Below the pieces are notes generated by a model that worked only from the letters and a program-made list of their open reading frames with translations, did no database searches and was not told the origin of the DNA. From the sequence record PP942979.1: a stretch of DNA of 64,000 nucleotides; one strand, written 5' to 3'. Positions 3,145 through 18,222 of the stretch are shown here, one piece after another; position 1 is the first letter of the stretch, and each line of letters opens with the position of its first letter. Both the position numbers and the translations under genes were made by a program.

Positions 3145-3551
3145 GCATACAAAAAGATTATGAACGATCACTGCGCCGACTTAAGGAGTCTGTCTATCGC
3201 ACTGAACAGTTAGGTTATGTTGTGCCTCGCTGTGTTGATATTGTTCTCTCAAAGTTGAAGCCGCCTGAGACTGTATCGTCTAGGAAGTATCTGGTCATGC
3301 TGCTGTTGTTTAGCCAGACCTGTGACAACCTACGATCTGCTTTGACAATGAGAGAGCAACTGGTAGTCAAGATGGCCATACTCAGTCGCAAACACCCAAC
3401 GCCAGAGATTCAACGTCGCATCAGACGTCTTGAAGAACTGGTCAATAATCAGGATAGGAATATCGAAAGTCAGAGGCTGCTGCTTGATTACAGAGCAAAC
3501 GTCCTGCTGGATATCCTTGACGGGAAAGAACCCAACTCACGATACACTTGA
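3141..3551 (+). CDS. Hypothetical helical protein
   Basis: 136-aa ORF, ATGA overlap with the upstream stop. Confidence 0.75.
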   Translation: MSIQKDYERSLRRLKESVYRTEQLGYVVPRCVDIVLSKLKPPETVSSRKYLVMLLLFSQTCDNLRSALTMREQLVVKMAILSRKHPTPEIQRRIRRLEELVNNQDRNIESQRLLLDYRANVLLDILDGKEPNSRYT

Positions 3552-3558
3552 GGTACTC

Positions 3559-4035
3559 ATGGAAATTTATGTAAGCCTGAGTCAGGACTCTACAGACAAG
3601 AACCGCAACAAGGTATCGAGTCCGGAGTCCAACACCGGCCGCGTTGACGTGTCTGAATATGCGTCACTGGAAAAGAAACTGCGTCTGCGTGAAGAAGCTG
3701 TCGATAAAGAGAAACTCGCTCAGAAGGCTGGTGGCGGGGATTCTGTAAAGGGTAAGAAAGGCGCCAAGAAGAAAGGCGATGACAAACCCGAAGAAGACGA
3801 TACTGACATTGATACCGACACTGATACAGATGGAGGCGATGATGATACAGATGACTCTTCCGATGACAGTGGAGACGACTCCGATGGAGACGCTAAAGCT
3901 AAGAAAGGTGGAAAGAAATCTAACAAGTCTGGAGATGCGGACGACGAAGACGCAGAAGACCCTGACGCAGACGAACCCGAAAGTGATGACGGGGATGCAG
4001 ATGCTGAAAGCATTGATGACGAGGACCTCGAATAG
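3559..4035 (+). CDS. MEIYVSLS-family protein 1, D/K-rich low complexity, 158 aa
   Basis: GAGGT RBS then ATG at 3559; N-terminus shared with 8343 and 17572. Confidence 0.8.
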   Translation: MEIYVSLSQDSTDKNRNKVSSPESNTGRVDVSEYASLEKKLRLREEAVDKEKLAQKAGGGDSVKGKKGAKKKGDDKPEEDDTDIDTDTDTDGGDDDTDDSSDDSGDDSDGDAKAKKGGKKSNKSGDADDEDAEDPDADEPESDDGDADAESIDDEDLE

Positions 4036-4531
4036 CGATCCCGTCGATGTGCCGAAGACGCATGATGCGATGATCGAAGTTCTGATCGCTATTCGCTACA
4101 TGTGCACCAAGCGGATGATCTATCCTGTAGTTGCTGCTACCATAGAACAGCGTAACGACTTTCTGGTGATGAACAAGCTGACTTTCCAGATGAAGCCGAG
4201 CATGTTCTACAGCGCTATTCAGGATAGCAACTGCAAAGTGAATGTGTGTTGGCTTATGCGAGCCTTCACACGCACTGCACTGCATTTTGGTCTGATGCCA
4301 ATCATCGCGGACAGAAGCGGTGACTTCCAGCCTCTGGTGAGTCGCTTCTTCACTCAGGACGATCCTGATTTTGCGTATCGACGTTTCTATGACGTGCGTA
4401 AGATGCCGTCAGTAACAGACATTCGCAAGCCCCGCCTGTATACGCTTAACGGAGTTAACTATGGCGTACAAGTCACAAGCCAAGAAACCGAAGAAGTCAA
4501 AAGCTGCGAAAGAAGCAGATACTCGGAATAA
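4016..4531 (+). CDS. Hypothetical protein (start uncertain, 4016 or 4070)
   Basis: 3' part of track ORF 3779..4531; the upstream part is a shadow of the preceding gene. Confidence 0.65.
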   Translation: MTRTSNSDPVDVPKTHDAMIEVLIAIRYMCTKRMIYPVVAATIEQRNDFLVMNKLTFQMKPSMFYSAIQDSNCKVNVCWLMRAFTRTALHFGLMPIIADRSGDFQPLVSRFFTQDDPDFAYRRFYDVRKMPSVTDIRKPRLYTLNGVNYGVQVTSQETEEVKSCERSRYSE

Positions 4532-5117
4532 GGCACACAAGCAAGCGAAGCGCGGTAAGCTCGCTCAGGCAGTGAAGACTCTCAGTGCTGCATCTGCCAA
4601 ATCGCGCCGCATGACTAAAGGTGAGAAACGTGCAATTCAGTTGCAGCCGTTCAAACCTCAGATTGTGCCTCAGCCTCCGAAAACTCCTCTGATGGAAAAA
4701 GGTCTGTCGCTTACTGCGCTTATGCGCTCGACACCTCGCCTGATGAAAGAGAACGCGATGGAGTGTTACGTTAACACTGTGAAACGCGGTAAGACTAACA
4801 AAGGTCTGCCGATGATCATGGCTAACGTTCGACACAAAGATCCACTGCGCCCTAATAAAACAGTGCGCATTCACAAGCCGATGATTATCGGTCTGGATGA
4901 CCCGTACAAGCCTATCTCAAAACAAAAGCGTGTGCTGGTCAGTTGTCCTTGTGAGAACTTTGTTTTCATGTGGGAGTATGCGAACGCCGAACACGGCTGT
5001 GCGCGAATCATTTACGGTAATGGCGAACCGCCGGACTTCACTAACCCCGGTCATGCGCCCGGTCTGTGCAAACATCTGATGGCTTTGGCCGATCAAGTCA
5101 AACGCAATGGAGATTAG
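4461..5117 (+). CDS. SWIM zinc-finger protein with Lys-rich N-terminus
   Basis: VSCPCENF...GLCKHL (CxC...CxH); GGAG RBS. Confidence 0.7.
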   Translation: MAYKSQAKKPKKSKAAKEADTRNKAHKQAKRGKLAQAVKTLSAASAKSRRMTKGEKRAIQLQPFKPQIVPQPPKTPLMEKGLSLTALMRSTPRLMKENAMECYVNTVKRGKTNKGLPMIMANVRHKDPLRPNKTVRIHKPMIIGLDDPYKPISKQKRVLVSCPCENFVFMWEYANAEHGCARIIYGNGEPPDFTNPGHAPGLCKHLMALADQVKRNGD

Positions 5118-5119
5118 TT

Positions 5120-5653
5120 TTGAATATCTTCACATCTGATACGCACTACGGAGCCGAACGCACTCTTCAATTTAGTCGCCGCCCATTTGGCAGTGTTCTT
5201 GAGATGGATAAAACCATGCTCGACCGCTGCAATGAGATAGCTACTGAAAAAGATACACTGTACCACGTAGGTGACTTTGGTTCCTATGAGATGGTGCAGC
5301 ACATCTGTGCGCCTGTCATTTTGATTTGCGGTAACTACGAGATCAATGACATGCACAAACAGTTTGCTTCGGACTTCGATGCTTTCCGTGCGCACCTGAT
5401 GCGTTTGGGTTTTGTTGACGTTGTTCGAGATAGTCTGGAAGTGGATGGAATGTATCTCAACCACTACCCAACTAAGCGCCGCGTTGACCAGTTCAGCCTG
5501 TTCGGTCATATTCACGGATTACAGATGGTCAAACGCAATGCGTTAAACGTTGGCGTTGACTGTCATCATTACGCGCCTGTTGATGCAGAGCGCCTACAGT
5601 TCTTCCGTAATGCAATCGAAAATCATTACGACGAAGACGTGTTTGGTTCATAA
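5120..5653 (+). CDS. Calcineurin-like metallophosphoesterase
   Basis: SDTHYG, HVGDFG, GNYE, NHYP, GHIHG, NVGVD motifs; TTG start after GGAG. Confidence 0.85.
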   Translation: MNIFTSDTHYGAERTLQFSRRPFGSVLEMDKTMLDRCNEIATEKDTLYHVGDFGSYEMVQHICAPVILICGNYEINDMHKQFASDFDAFRAHLMRLGFVDVVRDSLEVDGMYLNHYPTKRRVDQFSLFGHIHGLQMVKRNALNVGVDCHHYAPVDAERLQFFRNAIENHYDEDVFGS

Positions 5654-5662
5654 GGAGATTGC

Positions 5663-5938
5663 ATGTTCTTTAAAAATCCTGCCATGGGCGTTGTGCCCAA
5701 TCAGCCGATCATTCACTCTATTACGGAGATGCACCGTCGTGTTGCAGAACTGAACGGTGAGCTGATTGCTGCTGGCTGTACTGTGGTCGAGAACTGCGGT
5801 GAGATGTTGATTGAAGTACCTGCCGGAGCATCCGCCACTGTTGACGGAATTATGCAGCGTCACATCGACATGTTCAAAGGCCCGATTATCAGCCGCCCTG
5901 CGCGTTTGCAAATCGGAGGTGAAGATGCAGAAGCGTAA
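5663..5938 (+). CDS. Hypothetical protein
   Basis: AAGGAG RBS, 91 aa. Confidence 0.75.
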   Translation: MFFKNPAMGVVPNQPIIHSITEMHRRVAELNGELIAAGCTVVENCGEMLIEVPAGASATVDGIMQRHIDMFKGPIISRPARLQIGGEDAEA

Positions 5939-6359
5939 GTTCGATCCGAACGAACCCTACTCAGTATCTCTGTCGTTTGGTCCGCATATCGTTCACGGCC
6001 ATGCGCAAGACAGCGCGTTTGGTCAGGTGATGCAGAACATGTTGCTGCGCGAGATCAACAAATCATGCGAAGCGATGTTCAAGACTCTGGCTGATGTTCC
6101 TGTCGCTGCTGCTCCTACGTTTGATTGTGCCGAAGTAGAGGCAAGCAACATTCTTGCGGCTGTTCAACGTTGGCACGAAATGATTGCCAATGAGCCACCA
6201 GTGAAAGAGTTCGAACCGTGCTTTGTACCCGACTGGATGCGTCCAGGTCTTCGTGCTAAAGGCATGACTGATGAACAGATTGATAAGATCGTTATCACTG
6301 GCATCGAGCCTTCGTTTGAAGATCGCCCCGGCATCGTTCTGAGAACGGTGGGAGCCTAA
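5925..6359 (+). CDS. Hypothetical protein
   Basis: GGAGGT RBS before ATG 5925 (MQKRKFDP). Confidence 0.75.
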   Translation: MQKRKFDPNEPYSVSLSFGPHIVHGHAQDSAFGQVMQNMLLREINKSCEAMFKTLADVPVAAAPTFDCAEVEASNILAAVQRWHEMIANEPPVKEFEPCFVPDWMRPGLRAKGMTDEQIDKIVITGIEPSFEDRPGIVLRTVGA

Positions 6360-6574
6360 TGGTCTGCGCCGGTTGTGGTCGTCGTAGCTCTCGCATTAGC
6401 TATCACGGCGCCTCTGCTCCTCAAGTTGAAATCGAAGAGGACGATACGTTAAGCGCTGCGCGTTTAACTCCAATGGGTTGGGTACGCACCTGCGTTAAAT
6501 GCGGGAAAGTATCTGAGCCTTCACCCTTTGCAGAAAACATCAATAAGCCATGTGACTGCACTTTAGACGAGTGA
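6359..6574 (+). CDS. Small Cys-rich putative zinc-binding protein
   Basis: CAGC...CVKC...CDC; TAATG coupling. Confidence 0.65.
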   Translation: MVCAGCGRRSSRISYHGASAPQVEIEEDDTLSAARLTPMGWVRTCVKCGKVSEPSPFAENINKPCDCTLDE

Positions 6575-6576
6575 TC

Positions 6577-7305
6577 ATGATGAACAATCTCGTTGGAACA
6601 GCGTGTGCCTTAGACTCCTGCCGCTTCTATGCAGAGAATATGGTGCACATACAATTCGGCAGTTCTCTTTGTCCTGTGTCGCCTCAACCGCCATACAATC
6701 AACCTGTCAATAATCGCAATCTGCATTCGTGGATTGAAAGTATTGAACTGGCGTTTGACAATGCAATCAGTCGTACCGATCTGCAATTCCCGTACGCAGG
6801 CATTCTCTATCGTTTCCGTTCTATCTACGGGAACTATGTGGCCCAATACCGCGATGACATTTCGGCTGGTCGTCAGTATCGTGCGAAAGTAGGAACTCCG
6901 TTGGATGCGGTGCCGGAGCGGATTGAGGGCGAACATGCGAAAGAGTTTGCTTCTCGCTTCTTCAACTACACGGCAGGCCAAGTGACCGCGTTCTTATACA
7001 TGGTCTGTCTCGATCAGTATGCTCGTGAACAAACAGACTGCTATCTACCTGACCCACCACGAGCATTCGATTTGCCTCAGAACATCTTCAACGAAAGCCC
7101 TACCGCTTTCACGAAGACACACGACGTTCTGGTTAATCATCTGATGGAAGCGATGTTGCAGACGCATAGCGATACGCTGGACATTCATGTGTCGTTGCGT
7201 GATTACGGTCTGTCTGTTATCTTCCCGCTGGTGGCTGAGTGTCGCAATGCGATTTACGCCACCTGGCCAATCCCTAATGCCAAAGGACAAAAAGCAAATG
7301 TCTGA
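6577..7305 (+). CDS. Hypothetical protein
   Basis: Long ORF in operon; start 6571/6577/6580. Confidence 0.75.
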   Translation: MMNNLVGTACALDSCRFYAENMVHIQFGSSLCPVSPQPPYNQPVNNRNLHSWIESIELAFDNAISRTDLQFPYAGILYRFRSIYGNYVAQYRDDISAGRQYRAKVGTPLDAVPERIEGEHAKEFASRFFNYTAGQVTAFLYMVCLDQYAREQTDCYLPDPPRAFDLPQNIFNESPTAFTKTHDVLVNHLMEAMLQTHSDTLDIHVSLRDYGLSVIFPLVAECRNAIYATWPIPNAKGQKANV

Positions 7306-7831
7306 TGTTATTCTGTTTGACAATCAGAAAGACTGGGAAGACTTCGGTAGCGCGGTCTACGAAGAATTTCGTCTGAACGTGATGACAGGCAGTAGCAGCG
7401 CCAGTCAGATTCCTACAGTCGCACCGTTCGAAGACGTGAAACACCAACTCAGTTATTCGAACATTCTGCCTGAGGGTGAGCAATCGCCTATCGTTGTGCT
7501 GGACATCCTGATCATGGAAGTTGAACTGGCCGAAGGTGAATCGCGCAACTATAATGCAGACAGTCTGGACGAAGCTGTGCGCAAAGTTGTATCACTGTAT
7601 CAGGCTCGCGCTCGTGATCTAGACTGCCACCTGACTGGTAACTTCATTACTGCCGATCATAAAGTTAATGGTGCGCTGTTGCGTATCTACCGTAATCAGG
7701 ACTTCGTGTGCAAAGGCCATCCTGAACTTCTGCACGGACGTCCTCTGGGCATGTTCCATTGTGACAAGTGCGGTGAGATGCAAATGGCCGGAGCATTCCA
7801 CTTGCCTAAAGAGGAAACTCAAAATGGTTAA
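7298..7831 (+). CDS. Hypothetical protein with C-terminal CxxH...CxxC
   Basis: MSDVILFD start overlaps upstream stop; VCKGHP...FHCDKCG. Confidence 0.75.
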   Translation: MSDVILFDNQKDWEDFGSAVYEEFRLNVMTGSSSASQIPTVAPFEDVKHQLSYSNILPEGEQSPIVVLDILIMEVELAEGESRNYNADSLDEAVRKVVSLYQARARDLDCHLTGNFITADHKVNGALLRIYRNQDFVCKGHPELLHGRPLGMFHCDKCGEMQMAGAFHLPKEETQNG

Positions 7832-8291
7832 AGGCGGACTGTGGCGCGTCTTCCCTGATTACGACTCAGAGGAGATGCTGCTCAAACTCGGTGCTGCTAT
7901 CGGTATCGACCGTGACAGTGATGACGTGCCTGATGAATTGCACGTTACTCTGGCTTACGATGAATCGAACCCTGACGTTGAAGCAGAGCAAAACGATGCG
8001 GGCCAGTTCTTTGGCACCGTTGCCTCTGCTGAATTGTTCGGCGAAGGTCAAGATAAGATTCTGGTGCTCGTACTCGAATCGCCTGACCTGCAACAGGAAC
8101 ACGCTCGTATTCATGCGTGTGGTGCTGCCAAGTTTGCGCACACTCCATACCGCCCGCATGTGACGTTACTCAAACATGCAAAAGACAGCCAAGCTGAATA
8201 TCTCAACCAGATCATTCAGCATCCGGGCCGTCCTCCAATCACTCTGCGCTTCATCGAAGAAGATCGCAAGGTGCTGGAGAAGCGTAGCTAA
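7824..8291 (+). CDS. 2H phosphoesterase, Acb1 (T4 gp57B)-like
   Basis: Two HxT motifs (LHVTLAY, YRPHVTL); LVLVLESPDLQQEH resembles Acb1 LVLVLDSEYLRCRH; similar size. Confidence 0.75.
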   Translation: MVKGGLWRVFPDYDSEEMLLKLGAAIGIDRDSDDVPDELHVTLAYDESNPDVEAEQNDAGQFFGTVASAELFGEGQDKILVLVLESPDLQQEHARIHACGAAKFAHTPYRPHVTLLKHAKDSQAEYLNQIIQHPGRPPITLRFIEEDRKVLEKRS

Positions 8292-8296
8292 AACCT

Positions 8297-8323
8297 AGCG
8301 GTGGCCTTGGGCTGCCGCTTTTG
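8297..8323 (+). terminator. Intrinsic terminator
   Basis: AGCGGTGGCC-TTG-GGCTGCCGCT then TTT. Confidence 0.65.
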
Positions 8324-8342
8324 TCATTCTGGAGAAATTTCT

Positions 8343-8660
8343 ATGGAAATCTATGTAAGCCTTTCCCATGAGATTCGCGTTGGTCGTCAAGACTCTGATC
8401 AAGCTGTTGCGCCTGAAACCACTGACGGCCAGAGACGTGCTGTTGAGCAACAAGAGAAAGAGCGTATTGTTGAAGAATACGGCATCGACACTCCCCAAGA
8501 GGAAATTGACGAAAAAGAGAAGGAACGCATTGAGCGCGAAGAGGAAAAGCGCGACGAAAACAAGACCAAAGCACCGGAAGATTTGGGTCAGCGTAAGCCG
8601 GAATCTGAACTCACTGGTTCTGAGATTCAAGACCAGCATGATAACCTGACAAAGATCTAG
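8343..8660 (+). CDS. MEIYVSLS-family protein 2, E/K-rich, 105 aa
   Basis: GGAG at 8331, ATG 8343. Confidence 0.8.
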   Translation: MEIYVSLSHEIRVGRQDSDQAVAPETTDGQRRAVEQQEKERIVEEYGIDTPQEEIDEKEKERIEREEEKRDENKTKAPEDLGQRKPESELTGSEIQDQHDNLTKI

Positions 8661-8664
8661 GAAT

Positions 8665-8673
8665 CTGTAAATA
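8665..8673 (+). promoter_or_regulatory. CTGTAAATA motif upstream of the sigma-like gene
   Basis: Intergenic, about 33 nt before ATG 8706. Confidence 0.55.
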
Positions 8674-8705
8674 AGAGTCAAAGCAACTAACAGGTGTATT
8701 TGACC

Positions 8706-9743
8706 ATGAACAATAAGTCGAATCTCACAGGCGGTCAGATAGAAAGCGTCATGGACACAATGCTTCATGACTGCCTGCGTGAGATTGTTGAGAACACGGA
8801 CATATTCGATGTTCAACTGACCTATCTGTTGAACATGATTACGTCGAATAAAAAGCGAAAGCCGTACAACGCCGAGACGCGTGACCGTGCTATCAGCCTT
8901 CTGATTAAGGCGCTGTCTGTGCCTCGCGATCAGAAAATGATTTATATCCAGGAGCTTAAAATGGAGCGTAACTTCATTTACGTCTTCCTGGAAAATGTAA
9001 TTAAGCGATACTACACAACGTATGTAGATCTCTATCGGGGTTTCATTTCGACGCAAGATGCTGTTAAGCGCGAAGCGTATTCGAAACGCCTGAATGCCTA
9101 CGTGAAGATGTTTGGGGCAGAGTCTCGCTCCAAACTCTTTATCGCGTTGTGTCGTTTGAACGATCTTCTGCCGCAGTTCATGGAATACTTCCACTCGGTA
9201 GTTGCTGACTTCTATAGACTATGCAGCAAGCAAACAAAATTTTATGTTGATACGAACCGCGGTAAGCTGTATGACAGCAAAGACGTGCGCCAGAACTTCC
9301 TGCGCAACGTTATCGTGGCTATCAACAAGTATGACTCCTCTCGCGGTGCGATTGTGAGTTATACGAAGTGGTGGATCTTGAACGCCCAAACCTGTAGTAG
9401 CAGCGAGCATGAATACGGCATCGCTTATACTATTCCCCAGACTCAACGTAAGAAACTGGCGACAGGTGAAGATACCACTTCTCTGAATTTCTCGGTAAGT
9501 CTCGATACTCCTGCGAACGAATCTGATGAAGGTGCGGACGCGTCCCTACATCAAAAAGTGAGTGACCATCATCACTTAGAAGATCACGTAGATAGTGAAA
9601 GACGTACTGAAAAACTGAGGCTGCTTATTAAGCGCGTAGACCCACTCGGCGTTGCACGATTGACGATGGATGTGGGTGAGGAGTTCGATAAGTTCGAACT
9701 TGATATGATGCGCAAACATATGCAGGCTCAAGGGCTAGCCTAA
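8706..9743 (+). CDS. Phage sigma70-family RNA polymerase sigma factor (regions 2-3; no evident 4.2 HTH)
   Basis: DVRQNFLRNVIVAINKYDSSRGAIVSYTKWWILNA aligns by eye with RpoD [36 protein letters not shown]; later YTIP and VSLDTP. Confidence 0.75.
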   Translation: MNNKSNLTGGQIESVMDTMLHDCLREIVENTDIFDVQLTYLLNMITSNKKRKPYNAETRDRAISLLIKALSVPRDQKMIYIQELKMERNFIYVFLENVIKRYYTTYVDLYRGFISTQDAVKREAYSKRLNAYVKMFGAESRSKLFIALCRLNDLLPQFMEYFHSVVADFYRLCSKQTKFYVDTNRGKLYDSKDVRQNFLRNVIVAINKYDSSRGAIVSYTKWWILNAQTCSSSEHEYGIAYTIPQTQRKKLATGEDTTSLNFSVSLDTPANESDEGADASLHQKVSDHHHLEDHVDSERRTEKLRLLIKRVDPLGVARLTMDVGEEFDKFELDMMRKHMQAQGLA

Positions 9744-9745
9744 AA

Positions 9746-9754
9746 CTGTAAACA
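9746..9754 (+). promoter_or_regulatory. CTGTAAACA motif upstream of SSB
   Basis: Intergenic, about 39 nt before ATG 9793. Confidence 0.5.
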
Positions 9755-9792
9755 GTGATCACATAAGCACAACTCAATATTGAGGAACAACA

Positions 9793-11055
9793 ATGGCACG
9801 TGGATTTGGTGACATTCAAGATAACAGCAAACGCGATAGTTTGCGTGAATCAGAAATCTTTGAAATCTTCCCGCTGGCGAAGAAAGCAAACGGCAACTGG
9901 GTTTCAATTCGTCTGTTAGATCTCGACCTGCTTCCGATTAAGAAGCACTGGATCAAGATCATGGGCGGGAAAGACAAAGACAAAGAGATCAAAATCCCGC
10001 GCATGTGCGTTAGCTTCGACCCGGACAATCAGAACAAACCTCTGAACGGTATGAAGTGTCCGTACTGCGGCATCGCTCACGGCAACGACGAATCTGGTGC
10101 ACCGGCGCAGTACGACTATAAGTGGTACGCACAGGCAATCATTCGTGACGAGCAGGCTGCTGCGCCGCGTAAAATGCCGAAGATGACCAAGAAAGAAGAG
10201 AAGTCAGGCAAGAAAGAAATGGGCAGCGAGTCCTGGACTCCTGTGCAGTGTATTCCTCTGTCTAACTCTCTGGCTGGTAAAATCCGCGAGCTGGGTGAAC
10301 GTAATATTCACACGGTCAAAGACAAAAAGTCTGGCAAGAAGTCTAAGCAGGCGTTTCAGGTTAACCATCCGAAGTATGGCTGCGATATTGAAATCAAATA
10401 CAACGCCAAAAAATCTCCGGCAGAGCGTTACACCATCGAACGTGGCGATCATACTCCACTGACGAAAGAAGAACAGGCGTACCTGACCTGGGACTTCGAC
10501 AACTGGAACGAAATCTACGACATGCTGGGCCGTCTGAACGAAGAAGCTGCTATGGCTGACTTCAAGAAGATGGACGTTATCGGCGTTAACACCAACGATT
10601 CTGACGATGGTGATGACGATGACGATGACGACGATGCTATGGCGCTGGGCCGCAAAAAGAAAGGCGGCAAAGCGGACAAGAAAAAACGTCGCAGCGATGA
10701 TGACGATGACGACGAAGATGACGACGATGATGAAGATGATCGTCCTTCCAAGAAGTCTAAAAAGGCGACCAAGTCTCGTAAGATGTTAGACGATGACGAG
10801 GACGATGACGACGAAGACGACGAAGATGATCGTCCGTCGAAGAAAAAGAAATCTTCGAAAGACAAAAAGTCCTCGAAGGTTAAGTCTAAGAAGTCTAAGA
10901 AGTCAGATGATGACGACGAAGACGACGAAGACGAAAAGCCTAAGAAGAAGAAAAAGTCTTCTGACAAGGTGAAGTCTTCCGTTAAGAAGAAAAAGAAATC
11001 TTCTGACGACGATGACGACGACGCGCCGAAGAAAAAGAAGAAAAAGAAAAAGTAA
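9793..11055 (+). CDS. gp32-like single-stranded DNA-binding protein with long D/K block tail
   Basis: IRLL...HW...C...CPYC...Y....I and GCDIEI...Y pattern of gp32-like SSBs; adjacent to recA. Confidence 0.6.
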   Translation: MARGFGDIQDNSKRDSLRESEIFEIFPLAKKANGNWVSIRLLDLDLLPIKKHWIKIMGGKDKDKEIKIPRMCVSFDPDNQNKPLNGMKCPYCGIAHGNDESGAPAQYDYKWYAQAIIRDEQAAAPRKMPKMTKKEEKSGKKEMGSESWTPVQCIPLSNSLAGKIRELGERNIHTVKDKKSGKKSKQAFQVNHPKYGCDIEIKYNAKKSPAERYTIERGDHTPLTKEEQAYLTWDFDNWNEIYDMLGRLNEEAAMADFKKMDVIGVNTNDSDDGDDDDDDDDAMALGRKKKGGKADKKKRRSDDDDDDEDDDDDEDDRPSKKSKKATKSRKMLDDDEDDDDEDDEDDRPSKKKKSSKDKKSSKVKSKKSKKSDDDDEDDEDEKPKKKKKSSDKVKSSVKKKKKSSDDDDDDAPKKKKKKKK

Positions 11056-11063
11056 TGTGAAAC

Positions 11064-11090
11064 AGGGTGGCTAACGCCGCCCTTTCTTTT
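11064..11090 (+). terminator. Intrinsic terminator
   Basis: AGGGTGGC-TAAC-GCCGCCCT then TTCTTTT. Confidence 0.7.
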
Positions 11091-11112
11091 CTCTAATCTG
11101 GACCACCCAACA

Positions 11113-13641
11113 ATGGCGAAAACGAACAACAAGGCTGAGAAGAAAGCTGAGAAGAAAGCTAAAGTCAAAGCCGGTAAGACAAAAGGCAAAGCAGTCGCCT
11201 CTGATGATATTGGCGGCGTAGAAGTAGCAGGCTTTGACCTTGGTAGTCTGATGGACGATGTGCTCGACGGCATCGAGAAGAAAACGAAAGTAAGCTCACA
11301 GGACGCAGCGCGACACGCACCTCGTATCTCTACTGGTGTGCTTGCGCTTGATATGTACCTTGACGGCGGCATCGTACCTGGCGGCTGGTATACTTTCAGC
11401 GGCGGTGAGCAGTCCTGTAAGTCAACAATGACCATGAGTATCATGGCGAGCCTGATTCGTCTGAAATACTCTGGCATTAGCGTAGTGTTCGACTACGAAG
11501 GTTCTACTGATGCTGACTACGTTGCTGGCCAGCTCAAAACGTTTGGCGTTACTGTTGACGCGAAGACCATCTTTGGTGTGCGTGACGGTGACGACGGCAA
11601 CTGGATTATCAAACCGCGTATTCGCTACTACGCGCCGGACAACGGTGAACGCTTCTTCGATTATATGTCGATGCTGCGTCGTCGTCTGCCTGATAAGATC
11701 GTCGATAAAGACGGTAGCTCGTACTACATCTTTGAGAACAACAAAGAGAACGCCAAGAAGGTTGCTGGCAAGTACGATAAGAAGTGGTTCAGCCGTAACA
11801 ACCAGTTCAAAGTTCCTGCGTCTGACGGTCACATGCAGGCTATGGTTATCGTTGACTCCTATCCTGCGATGATGCCGGATCAGGTCGATGATGACGATGG
11901 CTCAAAAGCAATGGCACTGCAAGCGCGTATGTTCTCTGACGGCATCAAACGTTTCCGTGGTGGTATGCGTCGTAAGATGATGACCATCGTTGGCGTTAAC
12001 CAGTTGCGTCAGAAACCTGCTGTGATGTTCGGTAGCCCTGAGTATGAGCCTGGAGGTGATGCGTTGAAGTTCTATTGCTTCGACCGTGACACTCTGATTC
12101 GTACCGACCACGGTGTGATGACTGCACCTGAGATCGCGCAACTGCTGAAAGATGGCGTTAAAGTTTGCGTTGAATCGTTCGATGGTTATCAGCAAATCAA
12201 TGGCGCGTGGAAAGTTGAAGACGCTCCGTTCCCAATCGAACTGTCTGCTGGAGGCCATAGCTACATCGGTAGCGCAGAGCACCGTCAGTTTGTTCTGGTA
12301 CCTGGCGTAACTGCTGATGGTACGAATGTGTTCTATCCTGAGTGGCGTACTCTGAACGAGATGGCTACCGGTGGGCACGAAGGTGTATACGCTGGTCTGC
12401 GTGTACCGCCTGTCAAAGAACTGAAACAGAACGTACCTGATGCGTTCGATGAAGCAAGCCAGCTTGTAAGCAGTCTGCTTGCTAACTGTGATCCGGTAAG
12501 CGTTCAACTGCCTCTGGCCACGCATGGTGATACTACCTATGCAGCGAACGTGCTGACCATTGACGTAGTTGGTGAGAGCACTGATTCCTCCGACTTCTCG
12601 TTCTGGGCTAAGAAGCTGCTGGACATTGGCGTATTCGCTTACGCTGATGAACGTGGTATTCACATGCCTGGTCTGAACAAGCATGAGCTGGAAGAAGCTG
12701 TTGCGCAGGATGCTGACAGTGCGTTCCGTGGTCTGTCTTATGCCGCCACCTGTCGTCAACGTCAAACGCAGATGCTGATTGCTATTGCTGATCGCTTCCC
12801 GGAACTGACTCGCTATGTTCTGGACTATCAGTTGCAGGTAGGCGAAGCTAAAATCTATCTGGCTCCAGAGAACGACTTTGCCGAAGCGCTTGACCTGATT
12901 CTGCATCGTGAGATTGACGGGTACGATGACCTGTACGATCTGCTGATGCAGCAACTGGCTTACGTTGAAGACTGGTACAACTTCGATAGCTCTATCTTGC
13001 CTGTGCCGTTCTCGCTGAAAGTGCTGAACAAAGAAGTTGAGTTCTGGGATGTTAACGTTGCCGAGACTTCTGTGGTTATCACCAACGGCTTCGTATCGCA
13101 TAATAGTGATGTGCGCGTTCGTCTGGCTTCTCGTGCAGTACCTGATGCAGGCTGGACAAAACTCAAAGACGCACCTGGTGTTGTCGGTGAGAAGTCTGTC
13201 ACTATTGAGGGCGGTACTGACCGCTATCGTTTCATTGCTGCTAAGACCATCAAGAACAAGATGGGTGGCATCCCGAACCAGCAGACTTGGTTGCGTCTGT
13301 GGGAAGCTGACGGTAATGGTGAAGCGCGCGGCTTCGACCCTGTGTTCGATACGTGGCACTATCTGAAAGTTCTCGGCCTGATCAACGGCACACGTAAGAG
13401 CTTTAAGATCAAAGCGCCTTGCCCTCTGGCTTCCGAAGTCAAGATGGACTGGGATGACTTCCGCACTCTTATCAACGGCACCAAGACACAAGTTGTCGAT
13501 GTGTGTAAGAAGCTGAAAGTCAAACCTGCCGGCCTGCGTCTGTGGTGCTTCAAGTTCGTGCAATCTGCGAAAGGCAAAGAAATGTTGAAAGCGTCTATCA
13601 GTAAGTCTGCGAAGACTTCTGGTGATGAAGACGACGAGTAA
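11113..13641 (+). CDS. recA: RecA/UvsX-like recombinase precursor containing an intein (842 aa; 499 aa after splicing)
   Basis: RISTGVLALD..L.GGI..G, Walker A GGEQSCKST, VIVDSY, QARMFS, VNQLR, VMFGSPE..PGGDALKFY, KNK. Confidence 0.9.
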   Translation: MAKTNNKAEKKAEKKAKVKAGKTKGKAVASDDIGGVEVAGFDLGSLMDDVLDGIEKKTKVSSQDAARHAPRISTGVLALDMYLDGGIVPGGWYTFSGGEQSCKSTMTMSIMASLIRLKYSGISVVFDYEGSTDADYVAGQLKTFGVTVDAKTIFGVRDGDDGNWIIKPRIRYYAPDNGERFFDYMSMLRRRLPDKIVDKDGSSYYIFENNKENAKKVAGKYDKKWFSRNNQFKVPASDGHMQAMVIVDSYPAMMPDQVDDDDGSKAMALQARMFSDGIKRFRGGMRRKMMTIVGVNQLRQKPAVMFGSPEYEPGGDALKFYCFDRDTLIRTDHGVMTAPEIAQLLKDGVKVCVESFDGYQQINGAWKVEDAPFPIELSAGGHSYIGSAEHRQFVLVPGVTADGTNVFYPEWRTLNEMATGGHEGVYAGLRVPPVKELKQNVPDAFDEASQLVSSLLANCDPVSVQLPLATHGDTTYAANVLTIDVVGESTDSSDFSFWAKKLLDIGVFAYADERGIHMPGLNKHELEEAVAQDADSAFRGLSYAATCRQRQTQMLIAIADRFPELTRYVLDYQLQVGEAKIYLAPENDFAEALDLILHREIDGYDDLYDLLMQQLAYVEDWYNFDSSILPVPFSLKVLNKEVEFWDVNVAETSVVITNGFVSHNSDVRVRLASRAVPDAGWTKLKDAPGVVGEKSVTIEGGTDRYRFIAAKTIKNKMGGIPNQQTWLRLWEADGNGEARGFDPVFDTWHYLKVLGLINGTRKSFKIKAPCPLASEVKMDWDDFRTLINGTKTQVVDVCKKLKVKPAGLRLWCFKFVQSAKGKEMLKASISKSAKTSGDEDDE
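12076..13104 (+). mobile_element. Intein, 343 aa, in RecA (ALKFY|CFDRDT...GFVSHN|SDVR)
   Basis: N-terminal Cys, block B SAEH, block F FWDVNV, terminal HN followed by Ser; removal restores the RecA motif. Confidence 0.9.
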
Positions 13642-13648
13642 TAAACGC

Positions 13649-13674
13649 GGGAGGGCTTCGGCTCTCCCTTTATT
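13649..13674 (+). terminator. Intrinsic terminator
   Basis: GGGAGGGC-TTCG-GCTCTCCC then TTTATT. Confidence 0.75.
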
Positions 13675-13690
13675 CGTGTAAGGAGAACCA

Positions 13691-14113
13691 ATGCGTACTC
13701 AAATCTTTACCGCTGATATTGTTAATCTGCAAACAACCGCAACTAACGAAGAAACAGGCGAAGAGATTGTCACACAAACAATCGTGCCTAACGTCGAAGG
13801 TGAACTGACAATCAGTGTTGGTGAACTGTCTCGTCTGTCTGAAAGCCTGAGCGAGCCTACCGACTCTGACTGCCGCCTGATTGTTATCGTGTCTCCGGAT
13901 GCAACGCCGGTCTTCTATGACGAAGCGCTGTCCAGTTACTTCGACCCAATCGAGCGTATTGCTGATATTCAGGCCGGCAACATCGGTACCATCAACGGTC
14001 TGCAAGTCATTCGCGGCCTGCAAGGCGATCACCCTTACGTTGCAGTTGTCGAAGTACGTGACGCTGATACCGTAGAGATCGTTCGCTACAACGCGTCTGT
14101 AGTAAAACTGTAA
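13691..14113 (+). CDS. Hypothetical protein
   Basis: AAGGAG RBS, 140 aa. Confidence 0.8.
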   Translation: MRTQIFTADIVNLQTTATNEETGEEIVTQTIVPNVEGELTISVGELSRLSESLSEPTDSDCRLIVIVSPDATPVFYDEALSSYFDPIERIADIQAGNIGTINGLQVIRGLQGDHPYVAVVEVRDADTVEIVRYNASVVKL

Positions 14114-14151
14114 ATACTAAGTGGGAGTCATACTCCCACGTTCTCTGGCTT

Positions 14152-14203
14152 GATAGGCAATGCGCCACAAGCAAAACAAACTAACTCGATAGGCAATGCG
14201 CCA
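14152..14203 (+). repeat. Perfect 16-nt direct repeat GATAGGCAATGCGCCA x2 (period 36)
   Basis: Copies at 14152-14167 and 14188-14203, intergenic, abutting the RBS. Confidence 0.9.
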
Positions 14204-14213
14204 GGAGTGATTT

Positions 14214-14915
14214 ATGAAAAAGATTCAGACTAACATTTTACCCACCGAAGCCCTGCACGGACTAATCCACGGGTACGCGCGTCACGCCAAACAGCCTGAC
14301 GCTGCGAACAAGACGTTGTTCTATGTTGACGTCACTGAACGCAGTGCTAACGATGCACTGTACTCTATTCTTCGCCGCGATATTCCTTCAAACATCATCG
14401 GTACTGCCTACGATTGTCTTGTTGGTTTCCGTGGACATACAGCTCCTGCTCAACTTCCCATCGTGCTGTCGGAGAGTTTATATCACATAGGTTTGGATAG
14501 ACTCGCTAGTTCCCTGGCTGGAATTTTTGACGCTCTCGGCCGTACCGTGCATACTAACGACACGCAGATCACTATTTACGGTGAACCTGCAATTGAGAAA
14601 CTTCTGTCTATTGTTCGAGATACGCAGTTTAAGAGTTTCTTGGAAGTGTGCAACCCTGAACTTGCTTGTGGTGACTTCGACCTACAGTCCAATATCACTG
14701 TAGACAACTTTGTGTCTATGGCAATCGACCCGGACTTTGAAAAGCGTATTCCTGATAGCCCCGGGACCACCTATACATTTGGTCGTGACTTCATGTTTAT
14801 GCACTATGAAGACCTGCATAAAGTTATTCAGATGCTGCGTAAATATAAAAAGAATTGCACCCTGCATCCTGATTTGATGCGCTACTATTTCATGAACGTA
14901 ATCTGTAAATACTGA
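14214..14915 (+). CDS. Hypothetical protein
   Basis: AGGAG RBS, 233 aa. Confidence 0.8.
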   Translation: MKKIQTNILPTEALHGLIHGYARHAKQPDAANKTLFYVDVTERSANDALYSILRRDIPSNIIGTAYDCLVGFRGHTAPAQLPIVLSESLYHIGLDRLASSLAGIFDALGRTVHTNDTQITIYGEPAIEKLLSIVRDTQFKSFLEVCNPELACGDFDLQSNITVDNFVSMAIDPDFEKRIPDSPGTTYTFGRDFMFMHYEDLHKVIQMLRKYKKNCTLHPDLMRYYFMNVICKY

Positions 14916-14963
14916 TCAACAACCGAACACAATTGCTGTGTGTAGTCTCGCCCGACTTGGGCA

Positions 14964-14997
14964 GGGGAGAGCCGGATGGCCTCCCCATTTTTTTTTT
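14964..14997 (+). terminator. Intrinsic terminator
   Basis: GGGGAG(A)GCC-GGAT-GGCCTCCCC then A and a long T run. Confidence 0.7.
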
Positions 14998-15011
14998 GGC
15001 TGAGGGTTTTT

Positions 15012-16025
15012 ATGGCAACATTCATCGAAGTACATGAGGCCTACTTGCAGGAGTCTGCCTCTCGCGGTGCAGCACGATCTAAAATAACCGACCAGTTTAC
15101 TGCTTATCTTAAAAAGAGAAACGGTAAACTCCCGCCACTAGGAATCCCTATGGACGAGTTTGTCCGTTGGTCTAACATGATTCCGACAGAGATCAACCCT
15201 GACATATCTCGTCAGCTAATGTTTATTTCGTCAGCGACCTACACTCATTACGTTTGGTCTTTTACGAAAGCATCCTTTGTGATTGAGAAAGAATTGTGGC
15301 CACATCTGATTGAGGGTGATGCGCCTAAAGTGCTTCCCACTTCCACACTGCGCCAGCTGCCTCACTGGTCGCAGTGGATTAATTGTGTGTTCACGCTTGA
15401 TTACAAACACGCAGCGACAGGTAACAAATATACAATTGACCTAGAAGGATTCTGGGCAACATACACCAACTATCTGGAAGCAACACATCTCAATCTATCC
15501 TGCTTGGGTGTATACAATGATGGTACGGGAGATCAGATCATGTCTCTCTACATCATATTCGACATTACTAAAGACATGGAGTTGTCTGATGGATTCGATT
15601 GGTTCATTCATCTGGTAGGCGCTAGAGGCGCAACTGCTGTGGATATTAATTCTGATAACGGCGCTGAGGTTAATGAAGCTATCATGGCGCTCATGAAGCC
15701 TGTCGTTAACGTGCTACTATTTGTTGCATCGCAGGTAGATAACATCTATAAAGGAGGAATCAAATCACTCAAACCTAGACGTAGCGGTAACAGCTACAAA
15801 ATCATTCCTGTTCGTGATGTTCGTGAGTGGAATGTTGGCACTGAGTTGCTTAATGAAATTCGTACTTACGAAAGCGAAGTGAGATCTCATGAATCAAATG
15901 GTCGTCGTGCTCACATACGTCGAGCGCACCACCATAACTATTGGTACGGCCCTCTCAAGGGCGAGCGTGAGCTAAAATCGCGCTGGGTACCGCCATGCGT
16001 TGTTCGCGGCACTGTCGTAGAATAA
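15012..16025 (+). CDS. Hypothetical protein with C-terminal HIRRAHHH.YWYG...WVPP motif
   Basis: GAGG RBS before MATFIEV; long ORF. Confidence 0.8.
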   Translation: MATFIEVHEAYLQESASRGAARSKITDQFTAYLKKRNGKLPPLGIPMDEFVRWSNMIPTEINPDISRQLMFISSATYTHYVWSFTKASFVIEKELWPHLIEGDAPKVLPTSTLRQLPHWSQWINCVFTLDYKHAATGNKYTIDLEGFWATYTNYLEATHLNLSCLGVYNDGTGDQIMSLYIIFDITKDMELSDGFDWFIHLVGARGATAVDINSDNGAEVNEAIMALMKPVVNVLLFVASQVDNIYKGGIKSLKPRRSGNSYKIIPVRDVREWNVGTELLNEIRTYESEVRSHESNGRRAHIRRAHHHNYWYGPLKGERELKSRWVPPCVVRGTVVE

Positions 16026-16069
16026 CTCTCAAACAACTCCACGTATGGGCGTTATGCCCGGAGGTCAAT

Positions 16070-16828
16070 ATGTCTCGTGTACAAACTCTATGGATTCCTG
16101 ATATGGAATCGTATGAATCTTACATCCGTTCTCTGTGTCATATGGCGCGATCGCTGGAAAACAATGGACTGAACTACGGCAAGATGAAACGTGTCGTGTT
16201 CATCGGCCTGTCAAAGCGTAGTGTTGAATCCTACGTTAAACAGCTTCTCAATTCAAACACGTTGCCGAATACTCTCGTTTGCTTCGGCATCGACGAGCCA
16301 CCTGTTAGTCACCGTGAGTTCTCCTTCATCGGTTCGCATGTTGTGTTGATGCACGACCTGACATATGCAGGAGACAACGCGATGGGCCGCGTGTCGCAGC
16401 GTGTTCTCGAAATCATCCTGAGCCTGAAACAAAAGCCTGAGGATCGTGAACTTAAAAATGGTGCGCTGTCTCTTGTCTACCAAAACCCGATGCTGTGGTC
16501 TTACATCAGGGACAATGGTGCGAGTATGTACATGAACGCCGTACACATTCAATACGCAGAAGGTCTTGTGTCGTCTATCGGTGTTGATCAACTCATGTCC
16601 TGCAAAGACAACGAAGACTATCACAAACTTCATGCGCCTGTGATTACGATCGGCCTTGAGTTCTTCTACGTTAAGCCTGATGAACTGCTGTCCAAACTCT
16701 GCAACCTGATGTGGTCTCTCGGATCAACCACCTGCGAGTTTAAGGACAACTATAAAATCGTACTGCATGACGACTTCCGCCTCGCTTTCTTCGAAGAATT
16801 CCTTCTCAGAGAGTTTAAGGGGTTTTAA
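16070..16828 (+). CDS. Hypothetical protein
   Basis: GGAGGT RBS before MSRVQTL. Confidence 0.8.
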   Translation: MSRVQTLWIPDMESYESYIRSLCHMARSLENNGLNYGKMKRVVFIGLSKRSVESYVKQLLNSNTLPNTLVCFGIDEPPVSHREFSFIGSHVVLMHDLTYAGDNAMGRVSQRVLEIILSLKQKPEDRELKNGALSLVYQNPMLWSYIRDNGASMYMNAVHIQYAEGLVSSIGVDQLMSCKDNEDYHKLHAPVITIGLEFFYVKPDELLSKLCNLMWSLGSTTCEFKDNYKIVLHDDFRLAFFEEFLLREFKGF

Positions 16829-16904
16829 GATTATTCTGAGTTTCGTCATTAATTTCTCCAAGTTAGCAAGAAGTGCTGACTAAATAGTTATTTGGAGAAA
16901 TAAC

Positions 16905-17165
16905 ATGTGCGAACGTAGCCTCGTACGGTTGAAGTACATCGCACGGTCATCGAACTGGTGCAATAATAAAGTAAACGCTTGTAGTGAGCGGAAGGCGACG
17001 AACGTACAATGCGAAGATTTTTTAGCAGTAACAAAAGATTGTCGCAGTGTGCAGGACTCGTCCAATGTTGTTTCCTTCTTCAAAGATCAAGAGCTGGTAG
17101 GTCAAGCTATTTGGGAAGAGAAAGAGGGAGACCACATACTTCAATTCCGACTACTACTCGCATAA
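16905..17165 (+). CDS. Hypothetical protein
   Basis: GGAG RBS, 86 aa. Confidence 0.6.
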   Translation: MCERSLVRLKYIARSSNWCNNKVNACSERKATNVQCEDFLAVTKDCRSVQDSSNVVSFFKDQELVGQAIWEEKEGDHILQFRLLLA

Positions 17166-17224
17166 CTTTCCTAATAGGGCTATCAGAGCAATCTGGTGGC
17201 CCTTCTTCATTTCTAGGAGCTGTC

Positions 17225-17491
17225 ATGCCGTACCACCTGCAACTGCAAGAGAAACACTTTAGAGCTATTCAAGATCACGCGGACCAAATCATCGGTCTGT
17301 CCGCTTTAGTATCGAAGTTAGCTGAGGACGATATTGTCGTTGTCAATGTGTCCGTGTCGCGTCCACAAGACGCGGGTGTTCCCATTACCGTTGTTCGTGA
17401 CGGCTGTGAGCGATACTTGGAGGTGCAGAGAGCGCCTTGGCCCATCTCACCTGATTCACCATCTATAGAAATAGCAATCGTTCAATACTGA
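17225..17491 (+). CDS. Hypothetical protein
   Basis: AGGAG RBS before MPYHLQ. Confidence 0.65.
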   Translation: MPYHLQLQEKHFRAIQDHADQIIGLSALVSKLAEDDIVVVNVSVSRPQDAGVPITVVRDGCERYLEVQRAPWPISPDSPSIEIAIVQY

Positions 17492-17496
17492 CGCTT

Positions 17497-17522
17497 AGGC
17501 TGCCCTCGTTGGCGGCCTTTTC
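17497..17522 (+). terminator. Intrinsic terminator
   Basis: AGGCTGCC-CTCGTT-GGCGGCCT then TTT. Confidence 0.65.
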
Positions 17523-17571
17523 TATTTCTATGCTAATTTCATCTTGCATTCACTCGCACTGGAGAGACACT

Positions 17572-18222
17572 ATGGAAATCTACGTTTCACTATCGAAGCA
17601 GGAAGAACCACCGATAGTAACAGAGATCGACCAAAAGGCGCCTCGCATTAACGACAACAGCAAAGTGGGCCAAGTATTCGACGTTCACGTTCTACAGCAA
17701 ATGAGTTACCTCGACATGAAGAACATTCGTGGTGACGCAGGAGCGAAGTACGCCAAAGCTATTGCTGATTGGCTCAACAGTCAAAGGTCGATCGACAATA
17801 AGTTTCGCGTATCAAACAGAAGTAAAATCTCGATTGCTGTAAAGAACACACAACAGATGGCAGCGCGTTATCGCAACATCTACCTGTTAAGTCCTGAAAG
17901 CAATAAAGATCGCTGCTGGTTGCTGGTGGGTGAAGGCCCACATGACAACAAGCAGACTGTGGAGATTGGTCGGAGTCTTCAAATGGATGTGCTGTATGCT
18001 TCCGTTCGTACTATGCTTGCATCACACTTACCGACCGACGAGTGGCCAGGCGATAACACATACGAACATGTTCAATTGGAGTTGGACAAACGGGGCAAAC
18101 ATGGTGGTCGCGTGGCTAAGCGTCATTACACGTTTGCAAAAGAAAATGAAAATACACTGATCACGATGATGCAGGACGGGTTGTCCATTGCAGAAATCAC
18201 CGATTGGGTTCTGAAACAGTAA
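17572..18222 (+). CDS. MEIYVSLS-family protein 3, 216 aa
   Basis: GGAG RBS, ATG 17572. Confidence 0.8.
   Translation: MEIYVSLSKQEEPPIVTEIDQKAPRINDNSKVGQVFDVHVLQQMSYLDMKNIRGDAGAKYAKAIADWLNSQRSIDNKFRVSNRSKISIAVKNTQQMAARYRNIYLLSPESNKDRCWLLVGEGPHDNKQTVEIGRSLQMDVLYASVRTMLASHLPTDEWPGDNTYEHVQLELDKRGKHGGRVAKRHYTFAKENENTLITMMQDGLSIAEITDWVLKQ

Follow-up and report, generated by a model that had tools for sequence, protein, structure and literature searches.

An eight-residue N-terminal tag on unrelated proteins of Erwinia jumbo phage phB78 as a candidate capsid-targeting leader

Introduction

Three dispersed genes within a 64,000-nucleotide (nt) stretch of sequence record PP942979.1 (the window, meaning the whole stretch of DNA that was analysed), SHZ78_220, SHZ78_229 and SHZ78_238, encode proteins that begin with the same eight residues, MEIYVSLS, raising the question of what such a short N-terminal tag does on otherwise unrelated proteins. 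The sequence of the window matches Erwinia phage phB78 (PP942979.1, 261,824 bp, genus Alexandravirus) at 100% identity, and window position x corresponds to position x+186000 of the phage record. Phage phB78 has been placed in the 'Lupandier' group of jumbo myophages, which also covers PaBG, Lu11, NCTB, Dickeya JA/AD1, Erwinia Y3, Yoloswag and Alexandra (PMC7412058). On balance, comparison of these genomes makes it likely that the tag, M-x-I-x-[VI]-S-L-S or, in Lu11, MKIQLAVA, is a lineage-specific capsid-targeting leader and a functional analogue of the capsid targeting sequence (CTS) of phage T4, the lineage comprising Alexandravirus, Snuvirus, Sasquatchvirus, Yoloswagvirus, Salmondvirus and Lu11.

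Three genes with one N-terminus

The original prediction, made from the letters of the window, had noted open reading frames (ORFs) at 3559, 8343 and 17572 that open with MEIYVSLS behind good ribosome-binding sites, and these match the annotated coding sequences (CDSs) of SHZ78_220, SHZ78_229 and SHZ78_238 (Table 1), where a GAGG or GGAG lies 6-9 nt ahead of the ATG. In-frame TTG/GTG codons are found upstream of the tagged ATGs, yet it is the ATG and the tag that form the conserved part in orthologues from five genera. The exact 8-mer occurs three times in the whole 262-kb phB78 genome. The proteins had also been said to diverge past the tag, and so they do: in SHZ78_220, which falls in phrog_30142 (function unknown), the tag is followed by a conserved N-terminal module of ~60 residues and a variable D/E/K-rich tail, SHZ78_229 is E/K-rich, and SHZ78_238 is globular.

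A further claim, that synonymous codon differences between the copies place selection on the peptide, likewise held. The 24 nt encoding each of the three tags differ pairwise at 5, 10 and 7 positions with the amino acids unchanged, and in the tagged genes as a whole, AGY and TCN codons are both used at each of the two serines. Therefore, selection acts on the peptide, and it is at this level that the tag is conserved. The DNA upstream of tagged genes is mutually unrelated.

The tag in the phB78 genome and in related phages

Scanning the phB78 genome for ORFs of at least 40 residues, first with a degenerate DNA pattern and then with the regular expression ^M.[IVLM].[VIFL]S[LIVM][SA], gave exactly nine ORF starts, 9/9 of them annotated gene starts: the three genes of the window and SHZ78_181, SHZ78_184, SHZ78_187, SHZ78_197, SHZ78_198 and SHZ78_114. 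A relaxed expression matched 11 ORF starts in the real genome versus 0.5 in shuffled genomes, and the five-residue core of the tag occurs nine times at an N-terminus and four times inside real proteins. SHZ78_071 (79 residues, MQLTVAMS; MQLTVAMSAKQY), which has a good ribosome-binding site, may carry a tenth, more diverged tag. The N-terminal search for M-x-I-x-(V/I)-S-L-S suggested alongside the original prediction has in this way returned six to seven further phB78 genes and many in relatives. The nine tagged proteins are mutually unrelated in sequence, length and charge, some being intrinsically disordered, and when the three proteins of the window and the six others were scanned against Pfam and PHROG, NUDIX in SHZ78_114 was the one function recognised. 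Word-indexed searches for homologues brought up close relatives only.

As an add-on, the tag is modular and strictly N-terminal. In SHZ78_114, the NUDIX domain does not begin until residue 22, and in the SHZ78_238 family the conserved body (EPPIV...) follows the tag after a variable linker of 3-6 residues with insertions and deletions. Homologues of the N-terminal domain of SHZ78_181 occur in distant jumbo phages; the alignment with that of RsoM2USA begins just past the tag, and the RsoM2USA protein has a different leader of its own. Signals for the Sec, Tat and lipoprotein routes consist of a positive n-region followed by a hydrophobic h-region of at least ~10 residues. The tag does not resemble these, as it has ~6 hydrophobic or small residues, a mostly acidic position 2 and polar or charged sequence right after it.

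Orthologues of the three window genes retain the tag with conservative changes in every relative examined, covering five genera with Alexandravirus included. For SHZ78_220, the tags in Alexandravirus, Snuvirus, Sasquatchvirus and Yoloswagvirus are MEIYVSLS, MTIVYISLS, MIVFISLS and (TTG)EIIVSIS, and SHZ78_229 orthologues begin with MEMLVSLS, MEIFVSLA, MEMMVSLS, MEMLISLS or MQIVFSLS. SHZ78_238 is accessory, missing at the syntenic site in SNUABM_32, SNUABM_22 and AD1 and present in SNUABM_30/7/5 and Yoloswag with MKIFVSLS or MEIIVSLS. The set in Snuvirus SNUABM_7 is thus MTIVYISLS, MEMLVSLS and MKIFVSLS, and that in Yoloswag (TTG)EIIVSIS, MQIVFSLS and MEIIVSLS. Seven tagged genes were found in partial loci of Sasquatchvirus Y3 covering 50 kb, one of them lacking a phB78 counterpart, and another seven in partial loci of Salmondvirus JA29. 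The consensus of 31 tags is M-[EQK]-I-[FLY]-[VI]-S-L-S followed by A or K, where conservation ends. Position 2 is E in 13/31 and Q in 9/31, S-L-S is almost invariant across the five genera, and the small-x-small end of the tag is followed directly by alanine in 12/31 cases.

In Pseudomonas phage Lu11, MKIQLAVA or close variants stand on at least 12 genes in 60 kb. These cluster in gp203-gp219 (L013 13481-28716) and include an annotated topoisomerase I (MNVHIAVA); gp68 of the Lu11 head module begins with MKVYLAIA. Within IMG/VR, the MKIQLAVA pattern matched Lu11 only, and genuine MEI[YF]VSLS gene starts were confined to ~260-kb Alexandravirus-like contigs, matches on short unrelated contigs not being ORF starts. 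The cargo turns over, as seen from the presence or absence of SHZ78_238 among relatives, the extra tagged gene of Y3 and Lu11 tagged proteins without phB78 homologues. As reported for T4, the internal proteins have just the conserved CTS in common (PMC3012670), and a tag kept while its cargo turns over matches this behaviour.

Leader exchange with the T4 capsid targeting sequence

Searched against 1.84 billion representatives, a profile built from orthologues of SHZ78_184 returned 102 relatives, with homology beginning immediately past the tag. The stand-alone relatives carry one of two leader types, the first being VSLS-like (MRIIISLS, MQIQLSLS, MKIFVSLA, MKVYVSVA, MKLILSMS) and the second MKTFKQFITEK-like (MKTFKQFIxEK) in many variants. 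In the T4 record NC_000866, ipII and ipIII begin with MKTYQEFIAE and ipI with MKTFKEFTST; the MKTFKQFIxE leaders match these internal-protein starts, and the second leader type is therefore the T4 CTS. One relative with such a leader is encoded by a T4-like metagenomic phage (Pfam Gp23, Portal_T4 and T4 gp19), in which seven consecutive genes start with MKTFKQFIxE or a close variant (JGI 3300008007; L058 10001-15980). Two of these seven are ART-PolyVal-like and one is DUF5662, and the locus looks like a rich internal-protein locus in its own right. The RsoM2USA homologue of SHZ78_181 begins with MKTFKQFL, as does, in a like manner, another RsoM2USA gene. A scan for T4-type leaders found none in phB78, and no VSLS-type leader was found in the T4-like loci examined.

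Two cargo families, SHZ78_184 and SHZ78_181, thus bear either leader depending on the phage lineage. The T4 CTS, a propeptide of 10-19 residues, binds to the scaffolding core and is cleaved off by gp21 behind a Glu, and it suffices for the packaging of foreign proteins (PMC9026906, PMC5694885, PMC3012670). Judged from these comparisons, the leader swap is the strongest evidence that the VSLS tag would do the job of the CTS. An address tag like that of T4 internal proteins, as originally proposed, accordingly has comparative support, T4-like homologues carrying a T4-type CTS exactly at the position of the tag.

The identity of the cargo points in a similar direction. On a small metagenomic contig, three adjacent genes begin with MKIQLSMS (Pfam ART-PolyVal), MQIQLSLS and MKVELGLS. 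In polyvalent proteins of 2-5 thousand residues, one of which also has MuF_C, SHZ78_184 profile matches coincide with Pfam ART-PolyVal regions (P0027, profile 1781-1950 versus ART-PolyVal 1777-1959; P0039, 1122-1284 versus 1117-1287), and Y-R-G and one Glu are invariant in the SHZ78_184 family, Arg15 and Glu147 being among the invariant residues. SHZ78_184 may accordingly be a remote ADP-ribosyltransferase-like protein related to ART-PolyVal. Polyvalent proteins bearing this domain are predicted to be packaged and injected (PMC5512222), and T4 Alt, a packaged ADP-ribosyltransferase, provides a precedent for the cargo type (PMC5512222, PMC5694885).

The swap also bears on whether the tag has any targeting role, since it could be the relic of a duplicated or converted 5' end, serve translation initiation or early elongation, or form the beta-1 strand of alpha/beta folds. 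The three window copies are identical as peptides in phB78 but varied in relatives, which could suggest gene conversion, and ordinary enzymes begin alike, the GT2 glycosyltransferases of Lu11 and PaBG starting with MKIAVYAIA and MKLAVYAIA. However, differences at up to 10/24 nt and the switches of serine codon class exclude recent conversion, the upstream regions are unrelated, intrinsically disordered proteins are tagged too, S-L-S is near-invariant in five genera, and neither the lineage-wide change to LAVA in Lu11 nor the T4 CTS swap would be expected of a translation effect. Of all the readings considered, this one appears the least probable.

A scaffold-like head protein with copies of the tag core

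In phB78, the gene of SHZ78_135 lies between those of the head protease (SHZ78_137) and the major capsid protein (MCP). This protein of 672 residues, annotated 'ATPase', has a long acidic centre, and we infer it to be scaffold-like. It has internal copies of the tag core, which take the form proper to each lineage. In phB78 it contains DPQLVSLSRAV, a site kept in JA29 and Yoloswag as DP[QS][LM]VSLSR and aligned with SYVSIAAS in Lu11 and SFVALSG in PaBG. The Lu11 orthologue, gp67, has four [LIV]A[VI]A tetrapeptides versus 0.13 expected (P about 1e-5), PQLAVAAA among them, and the PaBG orthologue, gp82, has 6-7 such tetrapeptides versus 0.5-0.8 expected (P about 2e-5). In the S-type lineages, enrichment is not significant beyond the single conserved VSLS site. 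In T4, core proteins contain further copies of the gp21 site with which the CTS ends (PMC5694885), and by analogy the copies of the tag core in the scaffold-like protein would fit the T4 picture. An 'LALS' at the MCP N-terminus was also considered as a cleavage site and dropped; it is conserved in four lineages and lost in JA29, a loss that speaks against the packaging role. The head protease matches phrog_18299 only, and a PDB sequence search with it returned nothing.

Beside the head protease, SHZ78_136 combines a KMPT-N domain with HExxH, so that the head module holds a second, metallopeptidase-like protein.

These peptidases bring up another reading, in which the tag is an N-terminal propeptide or degron with no part in packaging, holding toxic enzymes inactive until a phage Zn-peptidase cuts it or timing their destruction by a host AAA+ protease. 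Such a role would suit the extra peptidases SHZ78_136 (KMPT-N and HExxH, in the head module) and SHZ78_204, the small-x-small end of the tag with alanine following in 12/31, and the resemblance of at least one tagged protein to a potentially toxic ADP-ribosyltransferase; a cleaved N-terminal motif common to ribosomal protein L27 and head proteins of Staphylococcus phage 80alpha is a precedent. Yet eight residues before variable linkers are unlikely to inhibit such different folds, disordered proteins included, and the tag core recurs in a scaffold-like head protein. Moreover, a targeting role has been shown by experiment for the T4 CTS (PMC9026906), so that the equivalence of the two leaders favours packaging, and the propeptide or degron seems improbable.

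A strongly beta-prone, alternating hydrophobic tag, together with an identical VSLS segment in the scaffold-like protein, could also mean that tags pair strand-to-strand and that the tagged proteins come together as a single body, within the cell or the head, with no dedicated receptor. The structural models were uninformative on such assembly. Pairing of this kind is very unlikely, and it overlaps with capsid targeting if the body forms in the prohead.

A putative role in head packaging

Capsid targeting would work as follows. Residues 1, 3, 5 and 7 of the tag are hydrophobic (the retained Met included), and residues 6 and 8 are small or polar. The eight residues may thus form a short amphipathic beta-strand that would dock the protein on the assembling prohead core, the most likely docking partner being the acidic scaffold-like protein whose gene lies between those for the prohead protease and the MCP. 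A diverse cargo, among it an ADP-ribosyltransferase-like enzyme and a Nudix hydrolase as well as several unknowns and low-complexity proteins of very acidic or basic character, would be enclosed in the head and delivered along with the DNA. The C-terminal half of the tag (hydrophobic-small-hydrophobic-small) would probably also be the release site for the prohead protease, a site suggested only by the enrichment in the scaffold-like protein, cleavage being a guess. From sequence comparison we infer the docking partner, cleavage, packaging and injection of the tagged proteins.

Several points weigh against this reading. Support for it is comparative, and both the presence of tagged proteins in virions and their processing are predictions. 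The tag has no similarity to the T4 CTS, position 8 being Ser or Ala and no Glu being conserved in or next to it, and neither the MCP nor the head protease of phB78 has a Pfam match at E <= 0.01, hence none to the T4 families. Enrichment of the scaffold motif was defined post hoc and is significant only in Lu11 and PaBG. For the virion proteome of PaBG, a low-depth analysis of 14 abundant gel bands, the 11 listed in the part of the source available include gp191, which is untagged, and gp83, the start of which (MLIKINLL) is ambiguous; this partial list holds three products of unknown function, gp191, gp83 and gp261. The GenBank record of Y3 labels no tagged orthologue as structural. The assignment of SHZ78_184 to ART-PolyVal is transitive, as direct Pfam matches to PF18760 are below threshold (best for homologue P0021, E = 0.0024, 19 bits versus a cutoff of 31.2), and a PDB sequence search with the SHZ78_184 profile returned nothing. 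AlphaFold2 models were too poor to reveal the state of the tag or an ART fold, with a mean predicted local distance difference test score of 50 for SHZ78_238 and 58.6 for the AD1 orthologue of SHZ78_184, and Foldseek searches of the PDB from these poor models gave no match at E <= 0.001.

Gene context also counts against capsid targeting, as SHZ78_220, SHZ78_229 and SHZ78_238 sit amid replication, recombination and transcription genes, with a phage sigma-factor gene directly downstream of SHZ78_229. It does so weakly, because the T4 ip genes are likewise scattered away from the head genes (T4 record). The same context could suggest that the tag docks proteins to a hub outside the capsid, either a DnaN-like sliding clamp or RNA polymerase, recruiting accessory replication or transcription factors. 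T4 gp33 binds the clamp, and SHZ78_229, small, acidic and upstream of a sigma factor, is reminiscent of it; hydrophobic residues at 3, 5 and 7 behind a Q at position 2 recall the clamp motif QLxLxL. Tagged genes further adjoin those for the clamp loader and SbcCD-like, SSB, UvsX and sigma-factor proteins, and a clamp loader is encoded by 'Lupandier' phages together with a homologue of the beta-clamp (PMC7412058). Against clamp docking, E outnumbers Q at position 2 (13/31 versus 9/31), the tag ends in Ser or Ala rather than Leu or Phe, and the motif is strictly N-terminal, its core being absent from DNA polymerase, ligase and clamp loader. Docking to either hub leaves the T4 CTS at the same place on T4-like homologues, as well as the copies in the scaffold-like protein, unexplained, and is quite improbable, slightly more so than the propeptide or degron. 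Hub docking, a propeptide or degron, the absence of a targeting role and tag-tag pairing all rank below capsid targeting. Each leaves at least one of three things unexplained: the swap of leaders, the restriction to the N-terminus, or the copies in the scaffold-like protein.

Rather than bringing cargo to a T4-like scaffold core, the tag could be a cargo-loading peptide that binds the HK97-fold shell directly as in encapsulins, or else an address to some novel structure of these 'hairy' jumbo phages, for instance a protein body that is ejected or a compartment of early infection. Such a reading is unlikely, albeit less so than the other alternatives. If one of them were true, the eight residues would be a portable, lineage-specific code from which every delivered effector could be listed from genomes.

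Other features of the window and its surroundings

A 15-mer, TTTCTATGCTAATTT, lies after a hairpin and T-run upstream of SHZ78_238. The identical 15-mer TTTCTAYGCTAATTT also precedes SHZ78_181 (L005 11903-11917, -) and is found at orthologous sites in relatives; in SNUABM_22, which is without SHZ78_238, it stands before the next gene. The 15-mer may be a promoter element, as a candidate only, and a common promoter of the tagged genes was rejected, as among these only SHZ78_238 and SHZ78_181 have it.

The unannotated ORF directly upstream of SHZ78_220 is probably a missed gene, with its orthologue annotated in SNUABM_32, SNUABM_22, SNUABM_7 and Yoloswag. In the UvsX/RecA-like recombinase, the RecA Pfam match falls in two stretches, and the insert between them looks intein-like, with boundaries after KFY and before CFDRDT at its start and between VSHN and S at its end. 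The C-terminal ~170 residues of the SSB-like protein are alternating poly-D/E and poly-K runs, and similarly extreme charged low-complexity blocks are found in SHZ78_220 and in the scaffold-like SHZ78_135. SHZ78_182 has a Tlde1 / L,D-transpeptidase-like domain, a type VI effector fold, and is itself untagged though it lies within a cluster of tagged genes.

Table 1 Features of the window and of the phB78 genome; coordinates are window positions unless another source is named.
Feature	Coordinates	Strand	Description
136-residue ORF	3141-3551	+	unannotated in PP942979
Shine-Dalgarno-like GAGG of SHZ78_220	3550-3553	+	
Tag 1, codons for MEIYVSLS	3559-3582	+	ATG GAA ATT TAT GTA AGC CTG AGT
SHZ78_220	3559-4035	+	annotated CDS, 158 residues, isoelectric point 4.1; starts MEIYVSLS
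Shine-Dalgarno-like GGAG of SHZ78_229	8331-8334	+	
Tag 2, codons for MEIYVSLS	8343-8366	+	ATG GAA ATC TAT GTA AGC CTT TCC
SHZ78_229	8343-8660	+	annotated CDS, 105 residues, E/K-rich; starts MEIYVSLS
SSB-like protein	9793-11055	+	
UvsX/RecA-like recombinase	11113-13641	+	842 residues
15-mer TTTCTATGCTAATTT	17525-17539	+	after hairpin and T-run, upstream of SHZ78_238
Shine-Dalgarno-like GGAG of SHZ78_238	17561-17564	+	
Tag 3, codons for MEIYVSLS	17572-17595	+	ATG GAA ATC TAC GTT TCA CTA TCG
SHZ78_238	17572-18222	+	annotated CDS, 216 residues, globular, accessory; starts MEIYVSLS
SHZ78_181			outside the window, tagged, MEIQVSLS, 628 residues
SHZ78_184			outside the window, tagged, MQIFVSLS, ART-PolyVal-like (remote)
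SHZ78_187			tagged, MQIYVSLS
SHZ78_197			tagged, MKILISLS
SHZ78_198			tagged, MEIFVSLS
SHZ78_114			tagged, MMINVSLS, Nudix hydrolase
SHZ78_071	phB78 record, L002 44054-44293	-	possible tenth tag
SHZ78_136	L004 6832-7956; phB78 record 106631-107755	-	beside head protease
SHZ78_182	L005 12481-12846; phB78 record 162180-162545	-	untagged

Implications

If capsid targeting is true, the tag would make the proteins delivered by jumbo phages of Erwinia, Dickeya and Pseudomonas readable from genomes as a list. An ADP-ribosyltransferase-like enzyme and a Nudix hydrolase would be candidates for it, together with many unknowns and with very acidic proteins that possibly mimic DNA. Such delivered proteins would likely be early host-takeover or anti-defence factors. 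It would further imply that more than one phage lineage evolved short N-terminal address tags, unrelated in sequence, and that these were exchanged on the same families of effectors. As with the T4 CTS, the eight residues could serve as a handle for loading foreign proteins into jumbo-phage heads. More generally, N-terminal k-mers that recur over unrelated genes of one phage may expose such systems elsewhere; for example, the T4-like metagenomic phage with seven CTS genes surfaced through the comparison of leaders. Within the library searched, no paper was found to describe the tag strings or any N-terminal motif of these phages. While the CTS as a kind of system is already known, this tag, its lineage, the probable non-Glu processing site and the cargo set are new.

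Comparison with known systems

Encapsulin cargo-loading peptides are likewise short, extended terminal peptides with alternating hydrophobic and small residues, and they load diverse enzymes into an HK97-fold shell. They differ in being usually C-terminal, in belonging to bacterial nanocompartments and in binding the shell protein itself, whereas the partner of the present tag is a predicted one. The beta-clamp motif QL[SD]LF / QLxLxL is also a short alternating hydrophobic peptide, sometimes N-terminal, and the phage has a DnaN-like clamp; its consensus is, however, not matched by the tag, which is strictly N-terminal and absent from polymerase and ligase.

Polyvalent and MuF fusions deliver effector domains, including ART-PolyVal, into the host with the DNA (Iyer et al. 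2017, PMC5512222), and the domain of SHZ78_184 occurs in them. There, the effector is fused in a giant polypeptide, whereas here it is a separate small tagged protein. The ejection proteins of phiKZ, 201phi2-1 and SPN3US have N-terminal propeptides thought to target them and removed by the prohead protease, and the SPN3US paralogues gp53 and gp54 have an identical 15-residue N-terminus (PMC5694885). Unlike the tag, these propeptides are mostly longer than 100 residues, are cut at A/S/G-x-E and are common to paralogues only, rather than to ~10 unrelated proteins, and they belong to another phage lineage.

The T4 CTS on IPI, IPII, IPIII and Alt differs from the tag in sequence (MKT[YF]..FI.E versus M-x-I-x-V-S-L-S) and in length (10-19 residues versus 8), and the tag has no terminal Glu, so that the T4 rule of cleavage after Glu ([LI]-x-E) cannot apply. 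The head protease and MCP of phB78 also lack Pfam matches to the T4 families (Gp23, gp21), and targeting and cleavage have been shown experimentally in T4 (PMC9026906), whereas they are predicted here. Yet in both cases, a short leader stands at the extreme N-terminus of otherwise unrelated, fast-evolving proteins encoded by scattered genes. The motif of the tag recurs in a scaffold-like protein as gp21 sites do in T4 core proteins (PMC5694885), and cargo families that have the VSLS tag in the lineage of phB78 have homologues in T4-like phages that begin with a T4-type CTS.

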